This document shows positions 4,386-39,665 of a DNA stretch of 64,000 nt, piece after piece. The notes beneath the pieces were generated by a model. The model was not told the origin of the DNA. It searched no databases and was given only the letters and a program-made list of their open reading frames with translations. Position numbers and translations under genes: made by a program. Location: positions 62,001 through 126,000 of IMG/VR virus record IMGVR_UViG_3300033183_000491; one strand, given 5' to 3'. The stretch's first letter is position 1. The number at the start of each line of letters is the position of its first letter.

Positions 4386-5351
4386 TTATCCTATTAATTC
4401 CCATCCCCAACTATCACCACTCATACCATCTGCATTATAATCAGTGACAGTTCCTTCGAAGAAGTTTTTAAAACTATCTCCGTTAATAATCCAGTCTAAC
4501 CAGTCTAAAGGATTTGTTTTTACCTTGAAGTTAGGTTTAAGTCCTAATTGAATTAATCGACGGTCAGCTAGATATCTAATATATTGTTTTACTTCTTCTT
4601 TATCTAATCCTTCAATTTGTCCCATCTCGTAAGCTAAGTCAATAACTTTATCTTCTAATTTAACAGCTTGTCGATACATTTTATAAATAGATTTTTTAAA
4701 TTCATCATTTATAATTCGTGGATGTTCTTTTACATATTCTCTAAATAATTGAGTCATTCCTTGAACATGCATTGTCTCGTCTCTAATAGACCATTCAACA
4801 ATTTCGCACATTCCTTTCATTTTTCCAAACCTTTGATAGTTTAATAACATAACAAACGCTGAAAATAGACTCATTCCTTCGTTACATGCAGACTGAGCAA
4901 GAGCCAAACCTAATCCTTTTTTAGTACTTACATCATTTTGTTGCATGAATTCAATTTTGTCACTCATTTCTTTATATTCAAGAAAGGCTCCATATTCTTC
5001 TTCGGGTAGACCAAGGGTATCATTTAAAAGAGCATAACTTCTTTGATGAGTTCCTTCTCGATTTGCAAAACTTAATAACATACTCCTAATTTCATTATTC
5101 TTAAATTTAGGAATAAATAAGTCACAATAGTTTCCACCAACTTGTACATCACTTTGAGTAAATAATCTAAGGATTTGTGTAATGTGATTTTTCTCTTCAG
5201 AAGAGATTTTTCCACCTTTCCATTGATTTACATCTTCAGCTAATTTAGCTTCCCAACTTCCCCAGTGAATTTTTTCATGACTTTCAGCTATTTCCATTGC
5301 CCATGGGTATTTAAACGGTTTATATGTTGTGTTATATTTTAGTAATGACAT
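4386..5351 (-). CDS. nrdB: class Ia ribonucleotide reductase beta subunit
   Basis: YKPFKYPW, FTQSD, EGTHQRSY (radical Tyr), EGMSLFSAF, RDETMH, NFFE...DY. Confidence 0.96.
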   Translation of the reverse strand: MSLLKYNTTYKPFKYPWAMEIAESHEKIHWGSWEAKLAEDVNQWKGGKISSEEKNHITQILRLFTQSDVQVGGNYCDLFIPKFKNNEIRSMLLSFANREGTHQRSYALLNDTLGLPEEEYGAFLEYKEMSDKIEFMQQNDVSTKKGLGLALAQSACNEGMSLFSAFVMLLNYQRFGKMKGMCEIVEWSIRDETMHVQGMTQLFREYVKEHPRIINDEFKKSIYKMYRQAVKLEDKVIDLAYEMGQIEGLDKEEVKQYIRYLADRRLIQLGLKPNFKVKTNPLDWLDWIINGDSFKNFFEGTVTDYNADGMSGDSWGWELIG

Positions 5352-5386
5352 TGTCGTTTAACCTTTGTAAAATCCTTGTATAATAA

Positions 5387-6445
5387 TTATCCTTGACAGC
5401 TTAAACATTCTTCAGGGTCAGCAAAATCTTTAAGTCTATCTTGTTCTACCTTTTGACTAACTTTTTCTGCAGAAGCACCGGCATTTGTTCTTAGATAATA
5501 TAAACCTTTTAATTTCTTTTTCCAAGCTCTAATATGAACTGCATTTACAACAGATTTATCAGTTCCAGCGGGAAAGAATAAATTAACACTTTGTCCTTGA
5601 CAAATAAACTCTTGTCTATCTCCAGCATGATCAACAATCCACCTTTGATCTAGTTCGAATGCAGTTTTAAAAACTTCTTTATGCCAATCTGACATATATT
5701 CTAAATGTTGTACAGAACCTTCAGCCAAAATAATTGATTTCCATTGTTCTTTCATCCATTCTTCAATATTATTATCATTTTCTGTGCAATAACTTCTTAG
5801 AACATTTTCTAGATGTGGATTTTTAACTAAGTAAGATCCGACTCTTGTTCTATGAGTATAGGCATTACTTTTCCAAGGTTCAATCGAAGGAGATGTACCT
5901 GCGATAATAGAAGAATTAGCGTTAGGAGCAATAGCTAATAGGTGAGAATTTCTAACATTATGACCAATACCATCCGGGCATTCACCTTTTATTTTAGATA
6001 ACTCTATTGTTTTCTGTTTTGCTTTTTCTTTAATATCCATGAATATACCTTTGTTTGCAGCAACTGCAATACCAGATTCAAACGGGATATTCTTTTTCTG
6101 TAGGTATGCGTGGAATCCCATGGCACCTAAGCCTAAACTTCTTTCAGATTGTGCAGATTTAATTGCTCTTTCTAAAGCTGGAGGTGCGTTATTAACAAAA
6201 TAAGAAATAACATTATCAAGATATTCTATAAGATCAGCAACAATTGATGTATCTTTCCATTCGTCATATTTTTCAATATTTAAAGAGCTTAAACAACAAA
6301 CTGCGCTTCTTTCAGGAGAAGTGCTAAGATGGATCTCGTTGCAATTGTGAACAAGTATATTATTTGCAAAAAAATTACTATTGTCTTTAACAGTTATATC
6401 GAAGACAGTCTCTTTAGCTTCTCTTTTAATTATTTTTAGTCCCAT
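5387..6445 (-). CDS. nrdA: NrdA C-terminal half fused to split-intein C fragment (IntC 34 aa, 6344-6445)
   Basis: MGLKII...VFDITV...FFANNILVHN then CNEI; CCLSSLN, LGLGAMG, AIAPNANSS, QGQSVN, KGLYY, CLSCQG. Confidence 0.95.
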   Translation of the reverse strand: MGLKIIKREAKETVFDITVKDNSNFFANNILVHNCNEIHLSTSPERSAVCCLSSLNIEKYDEWKDTSIVADLIEYLDNVISYFVNNAPPALERAIKSAQSERSLGLGAMGFHAYLQKKNIPFESGIAVAANKGIFMDIKEKAKQKTIELSKIKGECPDGIGHNVRNSHLLAIAPNANSSIIAGTSPSIEPWKSNAYTHRTRVGSYLVKNPHLENVLRSYCTENDNNIEEWMKEQWKSIILAEGSVQHLEYMSDWHKEVFKTAFELDQRWIVDHAGDRQEFICQGQSVNLFFPAGTDKSVVNAVHIRAWKKKLKGLYYLRTNAGASAEKVSQKVEQDRLKDFADPEECLSCQG

Positions 6446-7184
6446 ATTTCCTACCTTTTATCCATTCTTCATTATTAAGTATATCAATTTCTTTTTTACT
6501 CATTTGCCTTGAAATTTTAAGTTTTTCGTTAGAGTACCAAACTTTTCCTGATAAAGACTTAGAAAGTTTTTTACTGTGACTATTTGTTCTTTTATATTTA
6601 AAATCATCATCTTTTAAATTATACAAATCTTTCATTGCATTTACAAAACCTTTTAAACCTGATCCGTATTTTTTAAATCTAAATTTTGAATAAGACTTTG
6701 GAAAGCCATAGACTTCTGAACTATATATTTGCCACTTTCTTTTAGGTAATTGACCTTCTTTTTTAAAATAAGAAAAAGCTGCTTCTAATATTTCTTCATC
6801 TGTAAATCCTGTATATGTTGGATTTTTTTCTCCTGAAATTGCAATTGATTTTTTTCTTATCCATTCATCATATTTTTCATCGGGTACTACCCATCCTCCG
6901 TCACCGCCTATAGTCATATTATAGCCATTTTTAAAAGTATCATAATATTCTATATAATACTTTTCTTTTTCTAAGGCTTCCTCTTTAGAACTACATTCGC
7001 AAATTACTTTAGATACTATGTTTTTAGGACTGTGTTTTCTAATTGCTCTATAAAAGTGTGTATCTAATCCTGATTGTGCATTTGTAATATGTTTATGTAA
7101 TCTTTTTGACAACGTTAGTCCTGTATATCCAATATACGACTTATTTGTTTGCTTAAAAGTGTGCATATATATTATATATTTCAA
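6426..7184 (-). mobile_element. free-standing GIY-YIG homing endonuclease between the nrdA halves
   Basis: IIY...SYIGYT, conserved R, E and GYNMTIGGDG; NUMOD-like C-terminus (GEKNP, GKVW...WIKGR); TTG start with AAGGAG RBS. Confidence 0.92.
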
Positions 7185-7242
7185 AACGTCTCCTTAAGTC
7201 TGTAAATGAATTTCAATAATAAATATACATCTAGCGATCAAA

Positions 7243-8418
7243 TTAAGAAAAAACTAACTCATCGTCTTCTTTAAGATCTTTAGCTTTTACGTAGCCTCTA
7301 TTTGTAGTGTATACTTTATGATCAGGAGTACAAACTATTTTTTGACCAGACTCTTCGTCTATAATTTCAAGTACTTCCGCGTTTTTACTAATTAATCCTG
7401 CATCAGTAATTTCTTTGTATTCAATTTCTTCTGTATCAATATTGTAAGACAAAACAAAAACTTCTTTTCCTTCATTGAAAAGATTAACAACTTCTTCTAA
7501 TGATATTTGAGAATTTGGAACATTGTCAATTAATACATCAATTTTTGTATCTCCTGTTAAACAAAGATTTGAACCGTGAATTTTTAACCCTAAATCTTTT
7601 TGAAATTGTGGGAGATGTCTATTTGCTTCGTCAATAAAATTGACATAAGGCTCACCTGTCCTAAACCTAACTTGTAGTATTCTCTGCCAAAGTTGTCTTG
7701 CATCTATAGAATCTCTAATAGAACCGTCATTCGGATCAATAAGATTCCATTTTTCTCCTTTTAAAACTGCTTCCATAAAATCATCTGTAATATTTACAGC
7801 ATTATTTAGATTAAAGCATTTGCGATTTACATCACCACCAGTTGGAACTCTAATGTTAAGAAATTCAACGATATCGGGATGTGAAATATCAAGATAAGCT
7901 GCATATGAACCTTTTCTTGTTTTTCCTTGTCGATAAGCTGTCATATCGCTATCGACTGTTTTAAGAAAAGGCACTGGACCGGGAGAAATTGTACTATTTG
8001 ACCTAACGTCACTCCAATGTCCTCCAACGCCTCCTCCTTTTACAGACATCCAACGTAACTCATCTGAATGAGAGATTAGTCCTTCAAGAGAGTCATCAAC
8101 ATATGTTAAAAAACAAGAAATAGGTAATCCTCTTGTCGTTTCTCCTGGTTTAGGAGCATTTGACAGAATTGGAGAACTAAACATAAACCAGCCTTTTGAA
8201 GCATAATCATAAATTCTTTGAGCTAATTCTAAATTATTTATATTGTTTTCTTTTGTATAAAGATCACCTGAAAATGCTACAGCTGCTCTGGCAAAACTTT
8301 CTTGAGGAGATTCTTCATAATCATTCATATAATAATCTCTTAGTAAGTTTTTTGAAAAGTCTGTAAGTAAATTATCCCTATCTAAATCTATAGTAATACC
8401 ATAGCATTCTTTTTTCAT
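7243..8418 (-). CDS. nrdA: NrdA N-terminal half fused to split-intein N fragment (IntN 106 aa, 7246-7563)
   Basis: FSSPIL, PISCF, GGGVG, QGKTRKG, HPDI.EFL, TGEPY, GSNL then CLTGD...CTPDH...DLKEDDEL; no ATP cone. Confidence 0.95.
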   Translation of the reverse strand: MKKECYGITIDLDRDNLLTDFSKNLLRDYYMNDYEESPQESFARAAVAFSGDLYTKENNINNLELAQRIYDYASKGWFMFSSPILSNAPKPGETTRGLPISCFLTYVDDSLEGLISHSDELRWMSVKGGGVGGHWSDVRSNSTISPGPVPFLKTVDSDMTAYRQGKTRKGSYAAYLDISHPDIVEFLNIRVPTGGDVNRKCFNLNNAVNITDDFMEAVLKGEKWNLIDPNDGSIRDSIDARQLWQRILQVRFRTGEPYVNFIDEANRHLPQFQKDLGLKIHGSNLCLTGDTKIDVLIDNVPNSQISLEEVVNLFNEGKEVFVLSYNIDTEEIEYKEITDAGLISKNAEVLEIIDEESGQKIVCTPDHKVYTTNRGYVKAKDLKEDDELVFS

Positions 8419-8432
8419 AAATATTCCTTTAT

Positions 8433-8918
8433 TTAATCTGAACTTCCTATCTTGCCTGATTTTCTCCGGGAAGAATCGGTAATATTTAAATATTCGTCTT
8501 CATCGACAATAGAAAATTCATTGTCACATTTAACAACAACAATTTGTACAGGAAGTTTTTTATATGAATCAAGTTTATATTCTTCAGACCCTGTGTTAAT
8601 TAAATTGACAAAAACTTCCCCAGTATATCCACTATCAATTACTCCCGCTCTAACTTTAAGTGGTGTTTTAGTAATCGATCCTCTTTCTTGAATAAGAGCA
8701 ACATAACCTTTTGGAACCTTCATTTTTAATCCTGTTCCAATTAAAGATTTGTGATTCTTAGGTAAAACAGTTTGAGGAAGAATTGTAACACGATCTCCTG
8801 CGTTATATAAATCTAATCCTGCACTCTCTCCATTATATGCAGGAATATAGTCTTTTACATCTATATTATTTATATTTAAAGCTAATTTTAAACTTTCCAT
8901 TAAACAAATATTAATCAT
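8433..8918 (-). CDS. dut: trimeric dUTPase
   Basis: SAGLDL, ERGS, GVIDSGYTGE, R..G.IGSS motifs; start uncertain. Confidence 0.93.
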   Translation of the reverse strand: MINICLMESLKLALNINNIDVKDYIPAYNGESAGLDLYNAGDRVTILPQTVLPKNHKSLIGTGLKMKVPKGYVALIQERGSITKTPLKVRAGVIDSGYTGEVFVNLINTGSEEYKLDSYKKLPVQIVVVKCDNEFSIVDEDEYLNITDSSRRKSGKIGSSD

Positions 8919-10287
8919 CTTTTTTATTTACCTCTTTCCATTTTTCTCTTAATTTCTCTTTCATAGAGTGATTATCTTGAGTAACTACTTCATTTAGTGT
9001 AAGTTCAGTATCATCAAGAATATCAAATTTTGATTTTGCTGTATCGATGTTGATTGGAAAAAGCAAACCATCTCTACCAGCCCTGTTTTTTGCTACGAAT
9101 ATACGTCCTCCACCAGTTGACTTTTCCATAGGTTTTCTACTAATTGAAAGAACAACATCAGCTACTTGAGCTTTTCCATAAGATTCGCCAAGATTTTCCA
9201 AACCAACAACGTCAGATTTTGAAGAATCTTTATTAGCTTGTGAAGCTGTCCAAATAGGAATATTTAATTCAACTGCGAGGTTTCTTAGTTCAGTATATAT
9301 TAATTTTAATTCATGACGTAAAGAGTCATAAGCTTTAGAAGATTTCATAACATCAGCATAGTCAACCGTAACTAGACTTGGTTTAAATCCTTTTAAAGTA
9401 AGTTTTTCAATATGATTACGCAAAGTCATAACTGACGCAGAACCAGTTGGATATTCTTTAATAATAAGTTTTCCTAAATCCATCGATTTATATTTGTCAA
9501 TGACTTCTTGTTTTCTCTCAATGATTTCATTTGAAGGAATATCACATAAGTTCGAATCATATCTCTTACCTGTATCATGTTCTGATAATTCAAATGTATA
9601 GTGAATAACATTTTTACCAGCACGCATAGCTGCACATCCCATTGCTACCAAAAAGTGAGATTTACCAACACCTGTATTAGCTGCAATAACACCTAATTCT
9701 CCTCTTCCAAGACCACCCCTTAAAATATCAGGAGCATCAATCCTATCTAAACCTGTTGGACAAACTTGACGATTAATTTGAACAAAGCGAGCTTCAATAT
9801 CATCAAAGAAATCATGGCCTGCAGTATTAGGCATACCAACAGAAATAGCTTCTTTCATAATGTTTAAAACAGATTCATATTTTTCTGTTTGAATAAGTTC
9901 AACGCTTTGTTCTAGAGCATCGCGAAAAGCTTGTCTTTTACAAAATTCGAGTGATTTATCTTTTACATATTGTAAATCACCCATATCAGGATTTGTTTTC
10001 ATCCTGTGGAGATATTCAATGATTTGATCTCTTAAGACATGGTCTTTTGATTTAGAAAGATCTTCTTTGATAATAGTTATTAAGATTGTAAGTGTTGGAA
10101 AAGTTTTATATTTCTGATAGTATGAGTAATATCTTTCACATAGATAAGAAAGATATTTTAGATCAAAATAGTCTGAACTCATAACTTCGATCATTTGTGC
10201 AGACCAATGAACATCAGTTAACATACTTTGAAAGACTTTTTCTTGAAAAGCTTTTCCAAATTTAGAGAAGTTTTTTTCTTGACTCAT
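8911..10287 (-). CDS. DnaB/T4 gp41-like replicative helicase
   Basis: ANTGVGKS Walker A, FELSE, IIKEYPT, VDYAD, WTASQANK, KNRAGRDG. Confidence 0.94.
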   Translation of the reverse strand: MSQEKNFSKFGKAFQEKVFQSMLTDVHWSAQMIEVMSSDYFDLKYLSYLCERYYSYYQKYKTFPTLTILITIIKEDLSKSKDHVLRDQIIEYLHRMKTNPDMGDLQYVKDKSLEFCKRQAFRDALEQSVELIQTEKYESVLNIMKEAISVGMPNTAGHDFFDDIEARFVQINRQVCPTGLDRIDAPDILRGGLGRGELGVIAANTGVGKSHFLVAMGCAAMRAGKNVIHYTFELSEHDTGKRYDSNLCDIPSNEIIERKQEVIDKYKSMDLGKLIIKEYPTGSASVMTLRNHIEKLTLKGFKPSLVTVDYADVMKSSKAYDSLRHELKLIYTELRNLAVELNIPIWTASQANKDSSKSDVVGLENLGESYGKAQVADVVLSISRKPMEKSTGGGRIFVAKNRAGRDGLLFPINIDTAKSKFDILDDTELTLNEVVTQDNHSMKEKLREKWKEVNKKDD

Positions 10288-16113: not shown

Positions 16114-17163
16114 CTAATCACATGAATTATTAAATTGTGATATAGACACAGGAAAATTACCTAAGTCTTTATCATTATATCCTTTCTTAATTATTTCTGA
16201 AAATTCATTAATATAGTCTTTTTGTATATCAAAAACAATAGCATCATGAATTATAAAAATTGGAACTGCTCTTTTTAAATCTAATTGATTAACAAGTTCA
16301 GAAAAATAAGTTAATGAAATATCAACAGCAGACGATTGGACGAAATTATTAATTATTATATTTTCTTTCTTCTCTTCTAGATTCCAAATTGGTCTTCCAA
16401 AAAAATTTCTTCGTATTCCATGGTCATCTACTTTAGACGATATTTCTAGTAAATACTCCATATTAAAAAATTCTTTGATCGTTTCAAAAATCTTTAAGGA
16501 TTTAGATGCTGATATATTCTTTAAGTTTTCGTGACTTGCACCATACAAAACTGATATTATTGCTCTTTTTATAATTGACCTATCGATATTAAACTCTAAT
16601 AACTCATTGATTTTATTGTAAATGTCTCCATCAATATCATTTCCTACTATTTTTAGACAAAACCTAGGCTCTAAATTTACAAAATCTAAACTTAGCAAAG
16701 ATCCTTCTTTAAATCTACTCTCAAATATATTTCTGCATCTTTTAGGTAATGTTAAAATGTTTGGACCATTATTTACAATAAGCCTTCCTGAAATGTTTTG
16801 AGAGTTATCAAATTCACACCTGTCAGCATAACCTTGATTAGGTTTAAATGACTTTAAATTACTTAAAATACTTTTATTTATTTCTAAAGTTTGAATTGCT
16901 TTATATGCTAACGAATTAATTTTAGATCTTTCTATATTAGAAAAGAGACTATCATAGTTTTCTAGTCTTTTAACATATCCTAGTGAATCAATTAAATTTA
17001 TATTATCTAATATTTCTTTCTTGTGATTTGTAAATTCTTCTAATAGATAATCTGGTATTACTTCTTCTTCTTCGTAATTCTCGTTATTCTGTTCGAAGAA
17101 TTTAAACATTTTCTTAAAGTGATCATTATAATTTGTATTATATATTCTAAATAATTTTTTCAT
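16114..17163 (-). CDS. small family A DNA polymerase-like protein (palm/fingers, no exonuclease)
   Basis: SGRL...PNI, motif A SLDFVNLEPR, motif B R...K.....LYG, NFFGR, N..VQSSAVD, motif C IHDA. Confidence 0.82.
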   Translation of the reverse strand: MKKLFRIYNTNYNDHFKKMFKFFEQNNENYEEEEVIPDYLLEEFTNHKKEILDNINLIDSLGYVKRLENYDSLFSNIERSKINSLAYKAIQTLEINKSILSNLKSFKPNQGYADRCEFDNSQNISGRLIVNNGPNILTLPKRCRNIFESRFKEGSLLSLDFVNLEPRFCLKIVGNDIDGDIYNKINELLEFNIDRSIIKRAIISVLYGASHENLKNISASKSLKIFETIKEFFNMEYLLEISSKVDDHGIRRNFFGRPIWNLEEKKENIIINNFVQSSAVDISLTYFSELVNQLDLKRAVPIFIIHDAIVFDIQKDYINEFSEIIKKGYNDKDLGNFPVSISQFNNSCD

Positions 17164-17199: not shown

Positions 17200-20100
17200 T
17201 TATTTTTTAATATCTTCCCATTCAACATATTTAAATTTTTCCAAGTAATCTGAATTGAGTTCGTCAGATCCCTCGTCAGATTTTTTGTTTTCATTACCAT
17301 ATCTGTCTTTAACTTGTTCAAGTAATATTTTAAAAGCTGTTTCTTTTTCAATAGACTTAACATTATAGATACCAGAATTAGCTCTAGAGTTTATGATTTC
17401 TCGAAGCCAAGTATCAGCAGTTGAAATAGTATCTTGATTACCCCAAACGTGTTTTGATGTTGGTTTGTATTTTTTTATACTTAAATTATTTTTAAATTTA
17501 ACACGGGAAGCAATGCCATCACTTGGATTTAAAGAAACAGTTTTATTTTCAAGTTTTTTTTCAAGTTTTTTAATACTTTCTGGATTTGCATATTTAAAAA
17601 TTTCATTAAGACTTACTTGAGAAGTATCTTCTCCTGATAAGAGATTGAAATCTTCGTATATTTGCGATTGATTAATTATATCAATATGAAATCCATTATA
17701 TTTTTTACCATTTGGTCTTAATGGGACTCCTCGTTCATCTAAAACAATCCTTCCTTTAAACTTTTTTGTGTTTTCATCGAGGCTTTTAATTGTATTAACA
17801 TTCTTCGTTGTTATTCCATATCTATGTGGTTTTGGATAAGCCATATAATCAATACCTGCACCTACATTGTTTGCGCCTAGATTAAAACATGTTTTTATAA
17901 AAAATTGTGTTATTTTAAAGTCATCGTCATCATTAGGATCATATAAACAAACATTTTTTTGTTCACCATCAATATTTCTAACTAAATATATATCAGCAGC
18001 ATATCCTAAAGCGTGGTTCATATCTCCGCCGTGTGATCTTTTTAGTATTTTTTTTAACATATTTTTTTTGTTTCTAATATTTCCTTGAAGAAAAAGACCA
18101 AACTCTTCTACGTTTTCTGTAAGACTTCCTAAATCTTCTGTATAAAATGTATAAAATGTTTTAGCTATTTTATACCATAAATTTATTGATAAAGAACCGC
18201 CACTAATAATTTTAACTTTTTCTAAAGAAGGATAAACTTCTTGCGTCAACTTAAAAGATTCATCTATTATCTTTAATAATTTAGGCTGAATGTTGCTTCT
18301 TCTTTCAGTCCAAGCATCATATTCAAAACCATATTCTATATTACTACTCCCCGTAGGATTTTGCTTTCCATTTGGGTTATCTTCGCTAATATTATTTAAC
18401 TTTATAAATTCATCTTGGTTTCCTCCACCCACGAGATTTATTTTGTCTATTATTTCTTCTTTTATTTTTTTTATTCTATCTTTGTAAACATATCCAGTGT
18501 TTTTTAAACTTGAAAGTTTTCGCTTATCCTTTTTAGACATATTGATGCTTTTTGAAGAAGTTTTATCATTTGAAATCTTTAAAACCTGTTCGCTTTTTCC
18601 TTTAAATAAATCTTCTTCGATAATTTCATCTTCTTCAAAAACTAAAGATGACGTTCTAATAATCGAAGAATCTTCTTCAGACTCAGTGTCAGATTCTTCG
18701 ATTAAAGACCTTCTATCATAAGAGTTTTTGTTATACTCTGATTTTAAATCATATAAAATTGATGAATAATAATCTTCTCTAAATTCAGGATAAAAATATA
18801 AATTAGGATCTCTCTTGGTAAGAGTATCTCCTAATTCTTTATAGTCGATAGATAAATATTTTTTACCATAAAGATTATGTAACAAAAAAATATTTTTTTG
18901 TTTAGAGAAAATATTTTTTTTAAAAATACATTTATCTATTATCATATTAACATTGATTGAATAAGTTTCATCAATCTTATAAAATAAATTAAAATCGCTA
19001 TCTCCTGGTTTTAAATTATAATACTTTGAAAATGGTTCTGGTGTTTTTGTAAATTTCTCTTTCTCTTTAGTAAGAAGATATTCTCCGTTTATTGTATTTA
19101 AATAAATATCTGGTTCGAACAAATGAAAATTTGAATATTCATCATCTGATATTACTTGATTATTTAAAAAAACGTTTTGATTTTTTGCTATCTTATCATC
19201 TAATATAGTATATTCAAAAACAAAATAAATTTTATTGTCTTCACTTGAAAAATAAATATCTTTTATAAAGTCTATACTAGACAAACCATCTAAAGTATAA
19301 CTGTCTAGTATAGACTTTATATCTTCATAAGACATAATACTACATTCGTTAGAAATTTCGAAAGAAGTGTTTGTTAATGTCGACTTTAAAATTTCATTAT
19401 CATTTTTGTATAACTCTATACCGACTGAAGATGTTATTGATTGTCTTAAATATGTATTATTTTTATTAGATGAAAAAACTGAAAAGAAAGCCAACGAATA
19501 TTTGTTAAAAAAGTCAACCCCAGCCTTATCAGTATTATTAATTGTAAAATCTTCTCTAAGTTTAGACAGTATTTTATTGTAATCATTAAATGTTAAAGAT
19601 TTTACAGAAAAACCTACAGTTCTAGAGAAATCATTTTTATCTTTATACACATCAGAAATATTTTTTATATAAGAATAATAAAAATCTTTATTGTTATAGT
19701 TATAGAACTTCGATGTAAAATCATCGTTTTCTCCTGTTTCCAAAACTATTTCTTCTAAAGACTCATATCCTTCCATTTGGTCAATTGTTTTTGAAAAATC
19801 TATTGTATCAAAGTCTTTTCCAAGAAATAAATCTTCTGTGTTATTTAATGTTATTTGAGCTTTAATACTTGGATCCATTTTAAAAACTATTTCTTTTTGC
19901 GGAATAAAAGAAGAATGTTTTAATAGATTTTTATTTGTACCTGATAATTCAAATGCAAAAGAAAAATTTTGATCTTCAACTTCGTTATTAAATATTACTC
20001 TTCCATACGTTTCATAGTTTTTAATATTATTAAGAACATATCTAAATTCATCAATAAAAGAATAATAAGATCTACTCTTAAATTTTTCAATAATCTCAAT

Positions 20101-20286
20101 ATCAGACTCAGGAGGATTTTTTAAATAATCAATTATAGATTTGTCATTACAAAAGTTATTTAAAAATCCGTTACTGTAAAAGAATAGATTTTCCCATTTG
20201 TTAGAATAATATCCAGGAAAATGTGTTTCAAAGTTTATTTTAAAAGAATTTTCACTTTGTGAGTATTTGTCTTCTATTGAACTCAT
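17200..20286 (-). CDS. large putative baseplate/virion protein with C-terminal M15-like (LAS) peptidase motifs
   Basis: NHALGYAADI ... GFHIDI; last gene of the baseplate cluster. Confidence 0.55.
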   Translation of the reverse strand: MSSIEDKYSQSENSFKINFETHFPGYYSNKWENLFFYSNGFLNNFCNDKSIIDYLKNPPESDIEIIEKFKSRSYYSFIDEFRYVLNNIKNYETYGRVIFNNEVEDQNFSFAFELSGTNKNLLKHSSFIPQKEIVFKMDPSIKAQITLNNTEDLFLGKDFDTIDFSKTIDQMEGYESLEEIVLETGENDDFTSKFYNYNNKDFYYSYIKNISDVYKDKNDFSRTVGFSVKSLTFNDYNKILSKLREDFTINNTDKAGVDFFNKYSLAFFSVFSSNKNNTYLRQSITSSVGIELYKNDNEILKSTLTNTSFEISNECSIMSYEDIKSILDSYTLDGLSSIDFIKDIYFSSEDNKIYFVFEYTILDDKIAKNQNVFLNNQVISDDEYSNFHLFEPDIYLNTINGEYLLTKEKEKFTKTPEPFSKYYNLKPGDSDFNLFYKIDETYSINVNMIIDKCIFKKNIFSKQKNIFLLHNLYGKKYLSIDYKELGDTLTKRDPNLYFYPEFREDYYSSILYDLKSEYNKNSYDRRSLIEESDTESEEDSSIIRTSSLVFEEDEIIEEDLFKGKSEQVLKISNDKTSSKSINMSKKDKRKLSSLKNTGYVYKDRIKKIKEEIIDKINLVGGGNQDEFIKLNNISEDNPNGKQNPTGSSNIEYGFEYDAWTERRSNIQPKLLKIIDESFKLTQEVYPSLEKVKIISGGSLSINLWYKIAKTFYTFYTEDLGSLTENVEEFGLFLQGNIRNKKNMLKKILKRSHGGDMNHALGYAADIYLVRNIDGEQKNVCLYDPNDDDDFKITQFFIKTCFNLGANNVGAGIDYMAYPKPHRYGITTKNVNTIKSLDENTKKFKGRIVLDERGVPLRPNGKKYNGFHIDIINQSQIYEDFNLLSGEDTSQVSLNEIFKYANPESIKKLEKKLENKTVSLNPSDGIASRVKFKNNLSIKKYKPTSKHVWGNQDTISTADTWLREIINSRANSGIYNVKSIEKETAFKILLEQVKDRYGNENKKSDEGSDELNSDYLEKFKYVEWEDIKK

Positions 20287-20310
20287 GTTTTATCTTTCTA
20301 TCCTATAGAC

Positions 20311-23300
20311 TTAGCTTTTCTGTGCAGCGAGAGTAACGTCGTATTCTTTGAGTTTTTCATAACCCGGATCTATTGTAAGTTTAAATACTTTTTTAACTTT
20401 AGACGAACTTTTTGTTTTAGACAATTTATCTTTAATACTTTTTTCTTCTTCTGCTTCTTTTGAATTTAAAATATCTGTATAGTTTTGTAATTGACCAAAA
20501 TTGTCACCATAAGAAAGAGTTAGTCTTGTTGTAAACTTACCAGGAGATAAATTATGATCTATACCTGTGACAATGTATCTATTATCAATAGTAGTACCTG
20601 TCCCAAAATCTAAAAATATAGATTGTCCAAAGTTTACCCAAGGACATCCAAATATCTCAATACTCGCTTGAGATGGCATAATAACCAATGGAAGACTTGG
20701 ATTAATTCTACTGTTGATTAAGCTTTGATCATTTCTTTCTGGACGAGTCATAAATATTGTTGATAGTTTATTATCGTTTATTGTTGTTACATTTGCATCA
20801 ATCATTATAGAATTTTGCATTCCAAATGTTAAAGAAGGATATATTTCTTTATAAAGATCTTTTATCTCTCCAATAAAATTTTTTCTTCCTCTTAGTTTGT
20901 CTTCATTTATTGAATAAGTTCCATTTTTATTTTTAATAATGTATTCTCTCGATAAAAGAGTTTCTAATTCTTTTTTGTGTTTTACATTAAACTCTTCTAG
21001 ATTTTTTCTTGTATCACCTTCTCTTTTATTGTTTTGATAATCTATTCTATTAGCGATTAAATCACCAAAACTTCCTTTTAGATTGTTTGTATAAATTTTA
21101 TTTAAAATCTCTGAAGACGAACTAAAAGGTGAATCTATTCTGTCAAAAACTGATATTCTTAAAATTGATTTACTATTCTTGTTTGATTCTAAACTATCTG
21201 AAGATAGACAATCAAAATTTATATGAATAATAGGCATTCTAAATTCTGCTTTCGAATCTTCAGATGGTTTATCACCATAATATATTTTTTTTAGAGTTTT
21301 TGACAAGTCAGACTTAAAGCTTTTTTTATCAATTAAACTTTGTTTAGGAGAAACGGGAGATTTATAACTAGTTTTACCCTTTTTTCTTTCATATAAATCT
21401 GACAATCCTAAACTAATGTTGTCTTCAACTTGGACAAGTTTTAAAAGTATTTGTGTAATAAGAGATTCTGGCGTAATAACTGTATTATTAGAAAAAATAT
21501 CTTTTAAGAGTTCACCTAACATTTTCTTATTAATTAAAAATGAAGACAGGTTTTCATTTGCCATTAATGCGGATTTGTCATTTGCTGTGTAAAATATTGT
21601 TTGAATTTCATCAAACCTAGACTCAAATCTACCTTTAGGATTTGCTATGTAGTTTTGAACGATTGAATTTATAATTGATCCTAAACTGATATAATCTTCT
21701 GGGTTTTTTATTTGTGAATAAATCTTGTTACTTGTAGGATAAAAATGATCAATATATTCAACAGATCCCATGACGCTTTCAAGAATTTTTCTTTCATTGA
21801 CAGCTTCTAAATTATCTTGTTTTACAATTTCAGATATAACATTAACTAATTCTTCTGAGTACAGGTATATTTTTTTTAATATCTCTAATATTTCTTCAAA
21901 ATCAATTTTATTATTAATAATTTTTATTTTATAAATATTTAAAGTTGAATCAAAAAATTTTTCATCATAAGTTTCATTAGTTAAAATCTCTATAAGAGTT
22001 TTTATTTGATTTTTCCCCAAATTTTGAATTTGAAATTCAAAAAAATCATCAGAAAAAGGTCCAGTTCTTCCTTGAATGATTGTTATATATTTTGATATAT
22101 TTCTTTTTATTGACGATAAAACTCTAATCCTCGGCGAATTATAAGATATTAAGTAATCTCTTTGATCAGGTGTTAATCTTGAAGTCTCACTAAAAATTCC
22201 TTTAAATTGATTTGTATTTATCGTTATATCTTTATCTAATAGTTGACTTTGCAAACTTCTTATTTTACTTAATAAATTTTCAAATTCCGATTCTGTAATT
22301 CTGTTTCTAACAGATCTTTCAATTTTTTGATTTTTAAACTCGTGAGGACCTTTCATTGCAAGAGACAAGTCAATATTAACTTGACCAGTATTATCCATAG
22401 ATAATGAAGAGTTAACAATCATATATTTTTCTAAGATCTTTGAATTTCCAATAAAATATCCAATAGGATTTTTTACATTTTCTTGATCCGGATTCGACCA
22501 TCCATATTCAACAGCAATTTCAGCACCAAAAGCACCTAACAGGTCTGGTTTTATAAAAGCTTGAACATCGTTCATACGTGATCTATCATGTAAGACTAAA
22601 CTCATTCTAGCAGTCTTATAAGACATTAAACCTTTTGTAGGAGCAGAATTTATATTAAAACTTTTAATTGTCATCAAAGGTTGAGTAGGGTCTATAACAG
22701 TATTTTTCCTGTTTTCGTTTGGATTATTTTGTGAATAACCAACTGGTTCATCAAGATTAACCATCGTTTGTGGTGATGTAAAAATAGACATGTTTGTCTG
22801 AGTAAAACCATTTACTTTGTTACCTGAAAGGTTGTCGTAATTTGAAGTTTTGTTTTTTACGTTTCCAAACAAGAAATTATTAATTGTTGTCGAATTAGAA
22901 GAAACTTTTAATTCTTTACTTTTATCGTTTGACGATATTGAAGGAATAATAAAAGTTGCATTAAAATAAGGATATGATCTGTTTAGTTCGAGAGTAGTTA
23001 ATCCATTAAAGAATGTTGATAATTCTAGACTGTTTTGTGAGCCAACTCTTATACTCGGATTGCTAATTAATATTGAAGAAACAGAAGTATTTTCTTTCGT
23101 AGGATTTGATACTTTTTTATTTAAATTATACTCTTTAAAAGTTGTTTTTAAAGAATTAAAGTTTGTCTTCGTGTTTTTGCTCGTTGAAACTCCTGCAAAA
23201 GACGAAAGGGATTTTATATCTCTTTTAAAAGGAGGATAACTGCCTATAATTTTTGATCCCGTAGATCCTATAACAAGACCCATATTAAAATGGTCTTTTG

Positions 23301-23736
23301 AGTCATGACCAAATAAAATGTTTTTTAATACTTTTTGATTTTTAGAACTACTAGTCCAAAGTTTATTTTTAGTATAGTCTGTATGGACAAAACAAAAAGA
23401 TCTTTTAAGAAACTCTATAATTTCATTTTTTTGTTCATCACTGAATATTTGACTGTCACCCGTTCCTGCATTAATTACATTACACATAAATTCTAAGATT
23501 TCATACGTTGTGTAACCAATATTTGTTAACGACTGAAAAATGTAAGAAATTAAGTCATAAAACTCTTCTTTTGATTTAATAGAGTCTGATTCTTCTCCTA
23601 AAACAATTCCTTTTTTTAAAACTTCAGAAGATTTAACTATTTGTATAAAGTTTTCAATATTGCTTCTTTTTAATACAGAGTGTATTTTTCCATATGAGTT
23701 CTCTGATTTAATATTAGAATATACTCTTCCACTCAT
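20311..23736 (-). CDS. baseplate hub-like protein (gp27/late control D type)
   Basis: VEYGWS and C-terminal SIEIFGCP...GQ.IF....IDNRYIVTGIDHNLSPGKFTTRL; synteny. Confidence 0.65.
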   Translation of the reverse strand: MSGRVYSNIKSENSYGKIHSVLKRSNIENFIQIVKSSEVLKKGIVLGEESDSIKSKEEFYDLISYIFQSLTNIGYTTYEILEFMCNVINAGTGDSQIFSDEQKNEIIEFLKRSFCFVHTDYTKNKLWTSSSKNQKVLKNILFGHDSKDHFNMGLVIGSTGSKIIGSYPPFKRDIKSLSSFAGVSTSKNTKTNFNSLKTTFKEYNLNKKVSNPTKENTSVSSILISNPSIRVGSQNSLELSTFFNGLTTLELNRSYPYFNATFIIPSISSNDKSKELKVSSNSTTINNFLFGNVKNKTSNYDNLSGNKVNGFTQTNMSIFTSPQTMVNLDEPVGYSQNNPNENRKNTVIDPTQPLMTIKSFNINSAPTKGLMSYKTARMSLVLHDRSRMNDVQAFIKPDLLGAFGAEIAVEYGWSNPDQENVKNPIGYFIGNSKILEKYMIVNSSLSMDNTGQVNIDLSLAMKGPHEFKNQKIERSVRNRITESEFENLLSKIRSLQSQLLDKDITINTNQFKGIFSETSRLTPDQRDYLISYNSPRIRVLSSIKRNISKYITIIQGRTGPFSDDFFEFQIQNLGKNQIKTLIEILTNETYDEKFFDSTLNIYKIKIINNKIDFEEILEILKKIYLYSEELVNVISEIVKQDNLEAVNERKILESVMGSVEYIDHFYPTSNKIYSQIKNPEDYISLGSIINSIVQNYIANPKGRFESRFDEIQTIFYTANDKSALMANENLSSFLINKKMLGELLKDIFSNNTVITPESLITQILLKLVQVEDNISLGLSDLYERKKGKTSYKSPVSPKQSLIDKKSFKSDLSKTLKKIYYGDKPSEDSKAEFRMPIIHINFDCLSSDSLESNKNSKSILRISVFDRIDSPFSSSSEILNKIYTNNLKGSFGDLIANRIDYQNNKREGDTRKNLEEFNVKHKKELETLLSREYIIKNKNGTYSINEDKLRGRKNFIGEIKDLYKEIYPSLTFGMQNSIMIDANVTTINDNKLSTIFMTRPERNDQSLINSRINPSLPLVIMPSQASIEIFGCPWVNFGQSIFLDFGTGTTIDNRYIVTGIDHNLSPGKFTTRLTLSYGDNFGQLQNYTDILNSKEAEEEKSIKDKLSKTKSSSKVKKVFKLTIDPGYEKLKEYDVTLAAQKS

Positions 23737-24020
23737 TACGATATCTCTTTTTTAAGATTAATAATTTCGTTTAAACTAATAGGGATTCTTAAAACAACAC
23801 CTTCAGGAACTTGAAGCCACCACCCTATTCCACTTGCTGCTGCGATAATCCACCAATTATTTGCATCACCATAATACTCGTTTGCATAATGATCTAACCT
23901 TTTACCTTCTTCAGATATTACAAGCTCATACTGGATTAAATCATTTTCTACAGCTTTGTAAACATGAGGTGATATATTAATAAATTTTCCTCTAACTAAT
24001 TTGTATTTATCAATAGCCAT
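23736..24020 (-). CDS. LysM-type baseplate wedge protein (gp53/X-like)
   Basis: RLDHYANEYYGDANNWWIIAAAS....G..LRIP. Confidence 0.85.
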   Translation of the reverse strand: MAIDKYKLVRGKFINISPHVYKAVENDLIQYELVISEEGKRLDHYANEYYGDANNWWIIAAASGIGWWLQVPEGVVLRIPISLNEIINLKKEIS

Positions 24021-26869
24021 TATTTATTACCAGTCAATCCGTCTCTTCCATAAGACAAAGTATTATTAATTGATCCTACATCATAAATTGGAGCTCTCAT
24101 AATTCCTTCATGGTCAAGACCTGGAGCAATATCGTGTATTGGAGAGAATCCTAGAGTTATTTTTACTGAATGTGGCGCAAGAGATCCTCTATTATCTCCT
24201 TCAGTAGAGTTGTTTGTCTCCCATGTCGAATCTTGAAATTCAACATTTAAATTTGTTATAAATCCTGCGAGACCTTGTCCGTAAGATGAACTAAATGATG
24301 CTGAATATGGATTGTTTATTGAAGAATCGTCACCTATTACGGTCGACAGAACTACACTATCGTCTATTGAATCATAGAATTCTTTCTTTAATAAACTTTC
24401 TTTGTTTCTCATTCTTTCAATTTTATCTGAAATTTCTACTGCTTTTTTTGGAATCGCAATAATTTCCGATCTTTCATCTTGGTCTATACTTAAAGATGTT
24501 TTAATTAGTAAAAAAATAAAGTTTTTATCTAATTCAAAAAGACGTAAATCTTGTGAAAATGAAGGCTCTCTTGTAAACTCTCCTGTCAAAACAAATTTTT
24601 TATCATTATCTTTTACAAAACCTCCTGGATCAACTTTCCCAGATACAACTTGACTTATTAAAATCTTTTTTATAAAAATTGTCTCTATTGTTGGATCAAA
24701 GTTATTAATATTTTTTTCTAGATTAGTAAAAATTAAATTTCCTTCTTCGAGATTTATTTCTTTACCTTCTAAAGATTTGTTTTTATATATTCTTACACCA
24801 TTACTGGATTTAACACCATTTTTTTCAACCTTGAAATCCATTAAAAACTTTAATCTTTCAACATCTTCAGGGTCTTCTTCAAAGTTATTACTTGTAATTA
24901 AGTCAATTGAATCATTAATATAAGTTAAGTCTCTAACTGAGTCTTCACTTAATACGTAATATTCATCTAGCGAAGAAACCTTATAAGATAAAATCTTGTC
25001 ATTTAAAGTAACAGTATTTTCTATTTCTTTAATAGAATCTAAAGTAGATTTTTTATATTTTTTATTTCCGTGGAGTCTTTTTAAGTTATTAAAGCTATAA
25101 TTTGTTTTAAAAACATCACCAACTCTAAGTCTTATAAGAGGAGAAGATGTTGGCATTTGTGTAAATGGAAATCTAAAGTCTTTGTCAAATTTTTTATTGT
25201 TAGAAGGTATACCTTGAGACCACTGTGGGTAAACCATTGAAACTATTTTGTTAATTTGATACCACATTAAATCGTGGTCTGATTTTTCCATAGAAACTAA
25301 AGAGAAAGTTAAATTAATATTTCTTGTTGTTTTAATATAATGTTTAACATCATCAATTCTTCCGTATCCGGATGAACTACTATATTCTGGTGAAAAAGAA
25401 TCTGAAATAGAGTCTAAAAACGCGTGCATAGAAATAATTTCATTTGTTCTTAAATCATGAAAATAAAAAGGCATATATTCATTACCTAAATATTGTTCTA
25501 CTTTTCTTACTAAGTCTCTTGGAAGTCTCTTAGAACTTTTTCCGTGCAAGTCAGAAGCAAAATTCTTTTGTTGTTTTATAGAAGATTTACTAAGTCTGTA
25601 TTTTAAATACTCATCAGACTTAAGTAATTGTGGAAGACTCCCGATAGAAGTTTTAAAAGTAGTATCTTTAATAACATCGTTTTCTCTCCACCTATATTCA
25701 TGATCGTCATTTGGCCCATTAGACAAACCACCTCGATTAACACTATTTCTTTTTTCAAGATCTGATTTATCCCTTTCAGGGTTAATATTACCTAACCTTG
25801 AAGCGTTAAACATTCTTGATCTTTGATCTTTATAGCTTAAATTATACATCCTGTCTTTATTAAAAATCAAATAACCAATATTAATTCTTTCAACGATGAA
25901 TTTAAAGTAATATTGGCTAAATTCTATAAAAAATTTATCAAGAAAATTTTCAGATTCATTTTCTTTTGCATTGTATAAAATTTCTGAATGCCAGTAAGAT
26001 TCTTGTTGAAATTTCCTTATTAATAAAAAAACTCGATTACGTCCTACTTTTGAAAAACCAAGTAATGAATTTTTAAGATAGGTATATATAACGTCAATTG
26101 ACCCAGAAAAACTAGATAGATTTCCTTCATAAGAACTAGTTAAACTAGGAAATTTTGGGTCCGTGTTTATAAATTTGTCTAATCCAATAATAAAATAGTT
26201 AACAAGTCTTGAGAATTCATTTTCTCTTAAAACATTATCGTTCATGTTAATAATTTTACTGAAATAGTAATGTATTGGTTTAAACAAAGATGGTTTAATA
26301 TTTTTACTGAACCAGAAGTCTTTATTTAAGATATGATAAACACCTAAATAAATAATTGATTCAACAATATAATCAAATAAAAACAAAATATTTGTAAGAT
26401 CAACACCTTTTGGAGAAAGGATAATTCCTAAAGAGTTTAGTTCAACACCAGCAATCATTTCAAGTTCTTCAGCATAGATTGATTTTTGATTATCATTTTC
26501 TAAAAATACTGAATTGTATTGTCCATAATATTTGATTGGTTTATTTGGGTCATGCCCAAAAGAAGGATTAACTAAAATGTTTGTTTGTCCTTCTGCATTT
26601 GTTTTTTCTGGAAAAAGATTTCCTTCTTTAATATTAGCTTTTTCTTCTCCAAGAACGTTACTTTTACTAGTATCTCTTCCTGTAGCTAAAGATATTGCGC
26701 CAGTAGGTAGTCTTGGTCTAGCATAGAGTTTGTTTCTTAAATTGTCAAAAGAATCATAGTTTTGAAGTATTTGTTGGGACACATTACTTGCATCTAATTT
26801 ACTTTCTCCACCATCAGATATATCTTTATCTATGATTTTTCCGCTTGGGTCCAACACATACTTTGGCAT
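24020..26869 (-). CDS. baseplate / tail-tube initiator-like protein with large insertions
   Basis: AFLDSISDSFSPEY....YGR.D...Y..T.R.I.LTF, P..RLRVGD, GFITNL; follows tape measure. Confidence 0.65.
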   Translation of the reverse strand: MPKYVLDPSGKIIDKDISDGGESKLDASNVSQQILQNYDSFDNLRNKLYARPRLPTGAISLATGRDTSKSNVLGEEKANIKEGNLFPEKTNAEGQTNILVNPSFGHDPNKPIKYYGQYNSVFLENDNQKSIYAEELEMIAGVELNSLGIILSPKGVDLTNILFLFDYIVESIIYLGVYHILNKDFWFSKNIKPSLFKPIHYYFSKIINMNDNVLRENEFSRLVNYFIIGLDKFINTDPKFPSLTSSYEGNLSSFSGSIDVIYTYLKNSLLGFSKVGRNRVFLLIRKFQQESYWHSEILYNAKENESENFLDKFFIEFSQYYFKFIVERINIGYLIFNKDRMYNLSYKDQRSRMFNASRLGNINPERDKSDLEKRNSVNRGGLSNGPNDDHEYRWRENDVIKDTTFKTSIGSLPQLLKSDEYLKYRLSKSSIKQQKNFASDLHGKSSKRLPRDLVRKVEQYLGNEYMPFYFHDLRTNEIISMHAFLDSISDSFSPEYSSSSGYGRIDDVKHYIKTTRNINLTFSLVSMEKSDHDLMWYQINKIVSMVYPQWSQGIPSNNKKFDKDFRFPFTQMPTSSPLIRLRVGDVFKTNYSFNNLKRLHGNKKYKKSTLDSIKEIENTVTLNDKILSYKVSSLDEYYVLSEDSVRDLTYINDSIDLITSNNFEEDPEDVERLKFLMDFKVEKNGVKSSNGVRIYKNKSLEGKEINLEEGNLIFTNLEKNINNFDPTIETIFIKKILISQVVSGKVDPGGFVKDNDKKFVLTGEFTREPSFSQDLRLFELDKNFIFLLIKTSLSIDQDERSEIIAIPKKAVEISDKIERMRNKESLLKKEFYDSIDDSVVLSTVIGDDSSINNPYSASFSSSYGQGLAGFITNLNVEFQDSTWETNNSTEGDNRGSLAPHSVKITLGFSPIHDIAPGLDHEGIMRAPIYDVGSINNTLSYGRDGLTGNK

Positions 26870-26874
26870 GACGT

Positions 26875-27141
26875 TTATCCTTTAATAATAGGCTTATCTT
26901 TTAAATATTCATCCAAGTCAACGTCTTTTGAGCTTTTTATGTTTTTGACGTTTTCTTCTGTTACACCTTTTTCAAATTTATTATGTATTGTATCAATATG
27001 TCTATTAAACTTTGCAGACACAATTTCTGATGCTTTCTTTTTATCTATTTCTAAGACTTGAGAATATACTTCAGACATCATCTCTTTAATTTGATCTAGT
27101 TCTTTTAAGTTTAACAATTCTTTTTTAAAATCAATATTCAT
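26875..27141 (-). CDS. hypothetical protein
   Basis: 88-aa ORF filling the gap in the tail operon. Confidence 0.7.
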   Translation of the reverse strand: MNIDFKKELLNLKELDQIKEMMSEVYSQVLEIDKKKASEIVSAKFNRHIDTIHNKFEKGVTEENVKNIKSSKDVDLDEYLKDKPIIKG

Positions 27142-27147
27142 TTATTT

Positions 27148-30100: not shown

Positions 30101-30279
30101 GATTTTGTAAATTCTTTGTACTTGTCTTTAAGTTTATCTGTTAAACTTATTCTGACTTTGAAAGATTCTATAAATTTTTCTTGGATATCTTTTTGTAATT
30201 GACTCTCTTCATTTAGTTCACTTGTAGCTTTTTTAAGAGCATTAATCATTTCTAATTGGATTTGAGCAGAATCTGACAT
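27148..30279 (-). CDS. tape measure protein
   Basis: 1043 aa helical Ala/Leu/Met-rich, FDTFE.AA-like repeat region, C-terminal LNIDG; follows tail chaperones. Confidence 0.82.
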   Translation of the reverse strand: MSDSAQIQLEMINALKKATSELNEESQLQKDIQEKFIESFKVRISLTDKLKDKYKEFTKSIEESENLYKKNSKNIEEAFSVLNKKINENKDSLGKLNTFLLKTSMSFKKLGYQISNEFKDEIAWTKGILGGLFSIPKMAFNVFNKVNRSFTSLFQNPFILGTKLVLGGFISLFTQSMKYATRFVKFMSTLPLKIAGLAAKMGNSLRQDLVMTIGTAVEATKEMFDISEKYGSGAGSAIKSFAEASKSSLLEFRDITSESVILFGKGAQGVANRLQALAKRLSEMGVYADIFGKSLSKIVGGNASQFNFLEKSLRAIGASAEDVAYFSQEAVKSGQHINTVLLKMQMELNDVSKTSGVNQKIISRNFLVMRRNIQDFGHLSSKELLETSESLTKMGLSAQDAAGMFSKLDTFESAAQMAAMLSQSFGMNLDALKLIRAENPQEIFEDLRNAMMSTGRSFEQLNRHEKSLIASTTGLSQMALKSLFDFRDAGMSYEAAMKKMQENTPEAKQLKAFKEMSGSLQEIKNIMQETSFFESFFKGLRTSIVLASGIGDKFIEVSKTMEDFYLTAIGFGKDNKMMSSFKSAFKPIEDTLTKLIGDGTSSKKGLFNKNILTKTVKPFMDNLAKILGESFKDNSNLLKAQNNFSLLLKKTFDFNNIKNNPNNPGSTLFLTGTKLVGQFMKGFAAIGPGIVDTLASGFETLVDFIDGNTKFTNLSENFKTIFSLDDKEAEALELSIQKVLNTVTTKVIPSFFQLGKPIFKFIYDMTTTIVDIAFEAASKAIESTWLGSVLSSTVGIATNSLKKSTVRDYNIAKRFEFTDKDARAMNLEEKLRKGYDSEQAGAIGTLEAIIRNQVKDNEKKDELLKLLYDASESYVNEMLNSYDTKLNNLFNKLEENSIIIRQSSAKDWFGDLFGGQSVVQSGPSGMSVTNLADNDQILAGMGGGPVVEAIRYSGNVASMLARSIMQPSERKSSSTVQQNQQVSERPLVLNIDGQTIATIMVPYLPGAGLTKALKNPSLLKGQEGLNDNATRNPMGGSTEFAGI

Positions 30280-30338
30280 ATCTAAGTACTCACTTTAAAG
30301 GTATGATATAAATATTATCAAAAGAAAAACATAAAGAT

Positions 30339-30567
30339 TTAAAATTGTTTTTTAAATATATTTCTTGTGTTGTTTTGGCTTGGAGTACTTTGATTATTAT
30401 AATGATTTTGTTCTTGTTCTAATGTTTCTTTAAGTTTTCCTATAAACCAAGTTCTTTTCCATATTGGAAGGTTATAAGCATCTTTATAGCTGAAATTTAT
30501 GTGTTTCATAAGAACAAATAATTGTTCAAGAATGACGTCTTTGTTTTCAGGAGTCAGGCCAAAAAAA
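30339..30567 (-). CDS. tail assembly chaperone C-terminal segment (gp51/GT-like), probably reached by frameshift
   Basis: FFGLT...LEQLFVLMKH..FSY.DAYNLPIWKRTWF; overlaps the end of the upstream gene at a T7 run. Confidence 0.7.
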
Positions 30568-31386: not shown

Positions 31387-31406
31387 CTTATCTCCAAATA
31401 TACATA

Positions 31407-39623: not shown

Positions 39624-39665
39624 ATCTATAGTCTCCTGTTATTCTTTAAATCTTTATATTATATA

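Follow-up and report, generated by a model that had tools for sequence, protein, structure and literature searches.

How does a phage whose nrdA gene is broken within its catalytic barrel make ribonucleotide reductase (RNR), and what is a homing endonuclease gene doing in the break? The question is raised by positions 5387-8418 of a 64,000-nt stretch of viral DNA (the window; 62,001-126,000 of the 239,550-bp contig IMGVR_UViG_3300033183_000491), to which all positions below refer unless another locus is named. We put at roughly 85% the probability that this locus is a fractured class I nrdA, whose two halves are precursors for protein trans-splicing and whose GIY-YIG gene homes the whole cassette, composed of the N-terminal intein fragment (IntN), the endonuclease gene and the C-terminal intein fragment (IntC).

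In the open reading frame (ORF) listing, three successive minus-strand ORFs occupy 5387-8418. Together with the Pfam matches, the listing confirmed the layout that a first-pass annotation had given at these limits, and the parts named there were read in their assigned places: GSNL followed by a 106-residue IntN, a 34-residue IntC ending in HN and followed by CNEI, and a GIY-YIG endonuclease gene between the halves (Pfam GIY-YIG, E 4e-9). The features are as follows.

7243-8418, minus strand: ORF of the N half, 391 residues.
6426-7184, minus strand: ORF of the endonuclease, 252 residues, with a TTG start.
5387-6445, minus strand: ORF of the C half, 352 residues.
7564-8418, minus strand: nrdA N-extein, 285 codons ending in KIHGSNL, comprising the all-alpha domain and the beginning of the catalytic barrel.
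7243-7563, minus strand: IntN, 106 codons, CLTGDTK...TPDHK...DDELVFS, with its stop codon at 7243-7245.
7185-7242, minus strand: spacer between IntN and the endonuclease gene, 58 nt, with an AAGGAG ribosome-binding site.
6426-7184, minus strand: free-standing GIY-YIG homing endonuclease gene, 252 codons (PF01541, PHROG 314).
6344-6445, minus strand: IntC, 34 codons, MGLKII...NFFANNILVHN.
5387-6343, minus strand: nrdA C-extein, 318 codons and a stop, whose first residue is Cys+1 in CNEIHL.
4386-5351, minus strand: nrdB, RNR small subunit, 321 residues (Pfam Ribonuc_red_sm, E 3e-69).

On the minus strand, the junction codons are Leu-1 at 7566-7564, Cys1 at 7563-7561, the terminal Asn at 6346-6344 and Cys+1 at 6343-6341. 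The Pfam profile of the RNR barrel is divided between the halves, with positions 2-212 matched in the N half, which also matches the RNR all-alpha domain, and positions 376-523 in the C half. IntN ends at its stop codon, and the IntC ORF carries its own ATG and ribosome-binding site; the 3′ end of the endonuclease gene overlaps this ORF by 20 nt (6426-6445), an overlap repeated in four other loci (L004, L005, L006 and L008). The computed masses are 44 kDa for the N-extein-IntN precursor, 40 kDa for the IntC-C-extein precursor and 68.1 kDa for the 603 residues of the joined exteins, and the computed net charges are −14 for IntN, +1 for IntC and +20 for the endonuclease. Custom hidden Markov models run against the six-frame ORFs detected no further copy of the intein or the endonuclease in the window.

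The two intein fragments have what splicing would require. Both match the Pfam profile Intein_splicing, the N half covering its positions 9-93 (E 6e-9) and the C half its positions 126-155 (E 3e-6, which alone lies below the gathering score), and all of the class 1 splicing residues are present: Cys1, the TPDH of block B, the terminal HN and Cys+1. When IntN alone was searched against 5.8 billion proteins, 40 N-half clusters were returned, all ending at the same place, and the splicing residues C1, the TPDH His, HN and C+1 are retained in most of them.

The product expected from splicing is found ready-made in relatives. An IMG/VR scan with the N half gave 80 of the ~600 nrdA loci in the clade, on which tblastn was run with the five parts. 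In 32 close intein-less alleles (L009-L040), the N- and C-exteins abut without a gap in one ORF at GSNL/CNEIHL (the slash marks the junction), and most of the more distant loci are likewise gapless single ORFs. The intein-less junctions all read ...GSNL/C(N or S)E(I or V)..., with variation at third-codon positions and in a few neighbouring residues. Since the exteins abut in these relatives, the insertion in the window starts and stops exactly at the intein boundaries; the joining at NLCNE into a ~68-kDa NrdA, as foreseen in the first-pass annotation, is thus mirrored in the 32 alleles.

Two further loci, L041 (5869-8883) and L042 (5986-8661), encode one-piece nrdA precursors with contiguous inteins of ~370 and ~320 residues, bearing LAGLIDADG-like motifs, at the same site (GSNL/C...(H or G)N/CNEIHL). 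They differ from the window intein in their single ORF, cis-splicing arrangement and in-frame endonuclease domain, and they have no tblastn match to IntN or IntC; by that measure they are unrelated or distantly related to it. The contigs, GC-rich for L041 and AT-rich for L042, are both from phages. The presence of these inteins at the same point fits the remark of Dassa et al. 2009 (NAR 37:2560) that the site before the radical Cys is the commonest intein site in RNRs.

What makes the site critical is the residue that follows it. PDB searches gave an alignment of the N half with 6dqw that extends to SNLC, and one of the C half with the same chain that starts by pairing hn/CNEI with n-l-CSEI; in solved RNR alpha chains, the counterpart of Cys+1 is the Cys of the NLC(S/T)E motif. 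The best solved relatives, found with the C half as query, were 6dqw (E 9e-61) and 6dqx (E 1.5e-57), which we take to be class Id alpha subunits. With the Thermotoga maritima class II enzyme 1xje, the alignment of the C-extein opens by pairing Cys+1 (query residue 35) with chain residue 322, and Cys322 is presumably the radical cysteine of that enzyme, a numbering for which a literature check found no confirmation. The N half contains the PISCF cysteine (Cys102), and the C half the radical Cys, a CC pair, a YY pair and the C-terminal CLSC. Because the active-site residues are divided in this way, neither fragment has a complete active site, from which we soundly infer that splicing is needed for activity and hence for the synthesis of deoxynucleoside triphosphates. 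The dual role that the first-pass annotation gave to the thiyl-radical Cys, which doubles as the intein +1 residue, agrees with both the alignment to solved alpha chains and the statement in Dassa et al. 2009 that the NrdA split inteins lie directly N-terminal of this Cys. The NrdA is a short form with an NLCxE radical loop and no ATP-cone, and the adjacent downstream nrdB marks the enzyme as class I.

The arrangement itself was already known, as the first-pass annotation had suspected. Dassa et al. 2009 described it as the "fractured gene" in 26 loci from the Global Ocean Sampling (GOS), seven of them in NrdA (NrdA-1 to NrdA-7), with GIY-YIG or Vsr-like endonuclease genes between the split-intein halves. 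In 15 of their loci, the 3′ end of the endonuclease gene runs 6-69 bp into the IntC ORF downstream of it, and in 15 of 16 an RNA hairpin lies upstream of the endonuclease gene, often with a TATAAATA late-promoter element. The present locus is a new natural example of such a gene.

The closest published intein is NrdA-2. According to Pinto et al. 2020 (Nat Commun 11:1529), it has the junction SNL/CNE, splices in cis to 75-98%, and shows orthogonality towards eleven other inteins in trans. We took its sequence from their supplement, which was machine-read, with small errors resolved via the adjacent printed DNA. By hand count, IntN differs from it at 13 of ~105 residues (~88-89% identity) and IntC at 2 of 33 (94%), and IntN is 89% identical to P0010, a database allele one IntN residue away from the Pinto construct. 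"Near-identical", as the first-pass annotation had put it, was therefore an overstatement; at these identities, the window intein is a natural allele of NrdA-2, of the same family. Both share the NrdA host, the SNL/CNE insertion before the thiyl-radical Cys, the split position, an acidic IntN of ~105 residues, an IntC of ~34 residues, and an intervening endonuclease gene whose 3′ end overlaps the IntC ORF. They differ in the 13 IntN and two IntC substitutions, and in that the window belongs to a 239.5-kb phage contig, in contrast to a short GOS assembly. The NrdJ-1 split intein (GOS; structure 8ubs) is homologous (window IntN match, E 1e-17) and shares the blocks TPDH..YT.NRGYV...DDELV and NFFAN.ILVHN. 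It differs in its class II RNR host, in its insertion site one residue further C-terminal, and in being orthogonal to NrdA-2 in trans-splicing tests.

The same three-part cassette occurs in at least ten IMG/VR contigs (the window, L002-L008, L088 and L092), which, together with the 32 gapless alleles, shows that the layout is no product of chance. Comparisons among these contigs suggest that the cassette moves. Across six lineages, the cassette DNA is 84-94% identical and the surrounding exteins 72-81%. Synonymous divergence (dS) between the window and L004, L005 and L007 is 0.24-0.44 in IntN, endonuclease and IntC, as opposed to 1.1-2.1 in the exteins, i.e., three to six times lower in the cassette. 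The change in identity has sharp limits: at both junctions, codon differences in the exteins set in within 1-6 nt and track the extein lineage, not the cassette. This contrast shows, as far as substitution levels date the two, that the cassette is much younger than the exteins around it. The ratios of nonsynonymous to synonymous divergence (dN/dS) are 0.08-0.17 for IntN, 0.12-0.19 for the endonuclease, 0.03-0.15 for IntC and 0.05-0.16 for the exteins, indicating that all three cassette parts are under purifying selection and that intein and endonuclease are probably functional.

A maximum-likelihood tree was built from 63 joined exteins. The five complete fractured alleles are spread over four places in it, every one has intein-less sisters, and the well-supported branches require at least four gains or losses of the cassette. 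The nearest extein relatives of the window are intein-less, at 81-83% DNA identity. From the divergence contrast and the tree, the IntN-endonuclease-IntC cassette appears to move between nrdA alleles. An older lineage is represented by L008, whose cassette is as diverged as its exteins (72%).

Two loci have the character of decay stages expected of a homing cycle. In L003 (3546-3848, on the same contig as L095), the endonuclease is cut to a 100-residue in-frame remnant consisting of the first ~66 and last ~34 residues. This remnant still has the region of the TTG start and still overlaps the start of IntC, which suggests that the ends of the gene were kept for expression of the C half. The split nrdA of L084 has no endonuclease at all, and a spacer of 88 nt with a 12-bp hairpin stands in its place.

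The endonuclease gene has the expected make-up of a mobile one. Pfam GIY-YIG (PF01541) covers residues 2-89 at profile positions 1-78 of 78, PHROG 314 (homing endonuclease) is matched at E 3e-26, and the motifs are YIIY at 3, YIGYT at 17, KR at 27-28, EKEKYY at 72-78 and GYN at 87; they include the two signature motifs of the family, some 10 residues from each other, and its conserved Arg, Glu and Asn. It resembles the I-TevI-type phage GIY-YIG enzymes in its ~90-residue N-terminal catalytic domain and basic C-terminal half, presumed to bind DNA, and differs from them in that its gene is not intron-encoded. No NUMOD or other DNA-binding domain was matched in Pfam even at E 10, and no solved endonuclease related by sequence was found. 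Full-length relatives (at least 66% identity) occur only inside fractured nrdA, and the next matches, at 41% or less, cover the catalytic domain only.

In the spacer, the AAGGAG ribosome-binding site, a strong one, ends 5 nt before the TTG start. A stretch of ~30 nt (7202-7234, minus strand, CTAGATGTATAT...TTGAAATTCATTTAC) is conserved in all eight aligned fractured loci, including the divergent L008; it forms no significant hairpin, and elsewhere in the window the two conserved spacer motifs occur no more often than by chance, on which ground a phage promoter in the spacer was rejected. A scan for sigma-70-type promoters and terminators, which is uninformative in such AT-rich DNA, gave 34 promoter-like sites where 23 were expected, and found no terminator. 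One 11/12 match (TTGACA, 18 nt, TATCAT) lies at 7500-7529 on the minus strand, inside the IntN coding region, with the endonuclease start ~320 nt downstream; it is a lead only, as AT-rich DNA of this kind has many such matches.

Taken together, these observations agree with a cycle of homing by which the endonuclease would mobilise the whole split intein into empty alleles. The two precursors, N-extein-IntN and IntC-C-extein, would be translated separately. The acidic IntN would associate with IntC, and trans-splicing would proceed through Cys1, the block B His, the terminal His-Asn and Cys+1, releasing the intein pieces and joining GSNL to CNEIHL into an ordinary 603-residue NrdA, with the carrier of the catalytic thiyl radical as the ligation-site cysteine. 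During co-infection, the endonuclease would presumably cut insertion-free nrdA alleles, which are its likely target, and repair would then copy the entire IntN-endonuclease-IntC cassette into the cut allele. A bolder version, to which we give slightly better than even odds, is that the three parts form a single composite element now homing as a unit into the intein-less nrdA of co-infecting marine phages, with intein and endonuclease lineages paired over a very long divergence, down to a Klebsiella jumbo phage. The paired identities of IntN and endonuclease (95/89, 92/79, 70/66, 56/35 and 41/40%) fall in parallel along this range; for IntN, endonuclease and IntC they are 56%, 35% and 65% in L081/L082 and 41%, 40% and 50% in Klebsiella phage KP13-7.

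Several points weigh against the proposed cycle. The extein dS is saturated, so that the age difference is approximate only. If the enzyme cut ~20 nt away from the insertion site, as does I-TevI, boundaries as sharp as those of the cassette would be surprising, because cleavage at such a distance usually drags flanking markers along. The tree alone is compatible with multiple losses of an ancestral cassette instead of gains, a view opposed solely by the dS contrast. In the spacer, the fold of 7150-7275 is no better than that of shuffled sequences (z 0.24) and the TATAAATA element is absent, unlike most loci of Dassa et al. 2009, although both are frequent rather than defining features of fractured genes. 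Finally, splicing by the window allele is argued by analogy, the experiments having been done on the 88-94% identical NrdA-2.

Among the alternatives, the one that survives best concerns mobility only, and we regard it as unlikely: the endonuclease would not act on intein-less nrdA but would once have invaded a contiguous mini-intein, and the low divergence would reflect gene conversion between cassette-bearing phages or some other constraint. This "intein-targeted invasion" is the published model, in that Dassa et al. 2009 proposed just a one-time endonuclease invasion of an intein, and the co-divergence of endonuclease and intein fits a long-standing association better than repeated capture. 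However, no contiguous mini-intein allele of the window intein was found among the 80 nrdA loci, the low-divergence block spans both intein halves and stops exactly at the extein junctions, and the fractured alleles have intein-less nearest relatives at all four places in the tree.

The halves might instead assemble non-covalently and work unspliced, with the intein pieces as a docking module only. Split-intein halves do bind each other tightly, and the nrdA of Aeromonas phage Aeh1, split by an HNH endonuclease gene, is such a case (Crona et al. 2010, PMC3045599; described in Dassa et al. 2009). As at the window locus, two nrdA ORFs of Aeh1 enclose a free-standing endonuclease gene whose 3′ end overlaps the downstream half; the Aeh1 gene differs in having no intein, an endonuclease of another family (HNH, mobE-type; Friedrich/Gibb/Edgell), another break point and non-covalent assembly. 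In the window, the conservation of every splicing residue and the efficient splicing of NrdA-2 speak against such a complex, which would keep 140 intein residues on the radical-bearing cysteine at the centre of the barrel. We consider it very improbable.

Less credible still, in our estimate, is a dead gene, in which the endonuclease insertion destroyed nrdA and left decaying pseudogene fragments. The Campylobacter phage nrdA genes with related inteins are indeed annotated as disrupted or degenerating, but here both halves are intact ORFs, the dN/dS values given above (0.05-0.16 in the exteins, 0.03-0.17 in the intein) are those of constrained proteins, the arrangement persists in at least ten contigs and ~40 protein clusters, and intact nrdB, thioredoxin, dUTPase and thymidylate synthase genes flank nrdA. 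Least plausible of all is joining at the RNA level, by a group I intron with a GIY-YIG gene, or by translational bypass: such genes often lie within group I introns of phage nucleotide-metabolism genes and bypass is named as a formal alternative in Dassa et al. 2009, but intein blocks A and G form the exact limits of the insertion, which continues the reading frame of the exteins, IntN has a stop codon after it, and IntC has a separate ATG and ribosome-binding site. A group I intron or other RNA element was rejected after an Rfam search of 5000-9000, on both strands and at E up to 1, in which no family matched.

Related split genes were noted in other phages. The cultured 358-kb jumbo phage KP13-7 of Klebsiella (L085; OP617745.1, 29349-36654) has its nrdA broken into seven ORFs or more. 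An N piece ending in a related IntN (...QSNLC/CVTGE...DDEIISL), a related GIY-YIG endonuclease (40% identical) and IntC with an extein (...EILVHN/CEIDLPS) account for three of these, all annotated "hypothetical protein"; the insertion appears to lie one residue after the radical Cys, as in NrdJ-1. In Campylobacter phage CPt10 (L086; NC_027996.1) and other Campylobacter phages, IntN-like (~48%, residues 36-104) and IntC-like (59%) sequences flank two small ORFs within an nrdA annotated as a disrupted pseudogene, which may be another fractured gene and not a dead one. In L084 (1-900; Logan ERR14173702_13029), the uvsX gene upstream of nrdA is seemingly split by a split intein as well, with no endonuclease between the pieces: the N piece ends in KVEDLKEGDDVE and, after an 83-nt gap, the C piece begins with MKIAKITPVG...NGVKSHN/TGIMYS. 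UvsX is not among the host proteins in Dassa et al. 2009.

The window is DNA of an uncultured marine, myovirus-like phage. The first-pass annotation's description of a natural variant in full phage context was borne out by the structural and replication genes found in the window. They comprise, for metabolism and replication, thymidylate synthase, a methyltransferase, a ClpP-like protease, thioredoxin, NrdB, dUTPase, a DnaB-like helicase, a 5′-3′ exonuclease, UvsX and SSB, and, for structure, a baseplate hub, a tail tube, two giant tail-sheath paralogues, a major head protein, a head protease and a portal. Neither for the phage nor for the locus was a close relative in culture found; the best DNA match of nrdA, in the exteins only, is 66% (Methylophilales phage Melnitz and pelagiphages), and the best match of UvsX is 36%, to a Microcystis phage.

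Some other minus-strand features of the window deserve mention. The tail-sheath paralogues (35250-42773) are in tandem, with 1457 and 1035 residues, and their C-terminal parts match PHROG tail-sheath families. Between the replication genes and the tail tube and sheath genes lie five ORFs of 949-1141 residues (17200-34646), which had no PHROG match at E 1e-5; of two tried against Pfam, none matched. A 465-residue ORF beside the major head protein gene (52963-54360) matches PHROG homing/HNH endonucleases over near its full length (E 6e-77 and 4e-72), with weak Pfam matches to NUMOD3 and Mom; it may be a second mobile endonuclease, or the PHROGs may be mislabelled. A stand-alone ORF of 349 residues (16114-17163) has only a section of the family A DNA polymerase domain, matching 107-357 of the 381 Pfam positions, and the 1028-residue ORF upstream of it has no recognisable domain, so this polymerase may be split or highly diverged.

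The additions made here, namely cassette mobility, decay stages, phage context and unannotated jumbo-phage relatives, are useful but incremental, and leave the understanding of inteins and RNR unchanged. An NrdA-2-type fractured gene is now seen in a long, recognisable phage contig, the original loci being short metagenomic assemblies of unknown origin, and its counterpart in the culturable KP13-7 would permit direct experiments. The empty alleles and the decay stages, with a deleted endonuclease or none, are natural substrates for endonuclease tests, and the ~40 natural IntN variants, with IntC retrievable from the loci, offer a panel for engineers using NrdA-2 as an orthogonal splicing tool. 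If true, homing as a unit would be a protein-level analogue of the "collaborative homing" of introns and free-standing endonucleases, and to our knowledge it has not been shown before for a fractured-gene cassette. At least ten cassette-bearing contigs and more than 30 empty alleles provide population-level evidence that split intein and endonuclease spread together.

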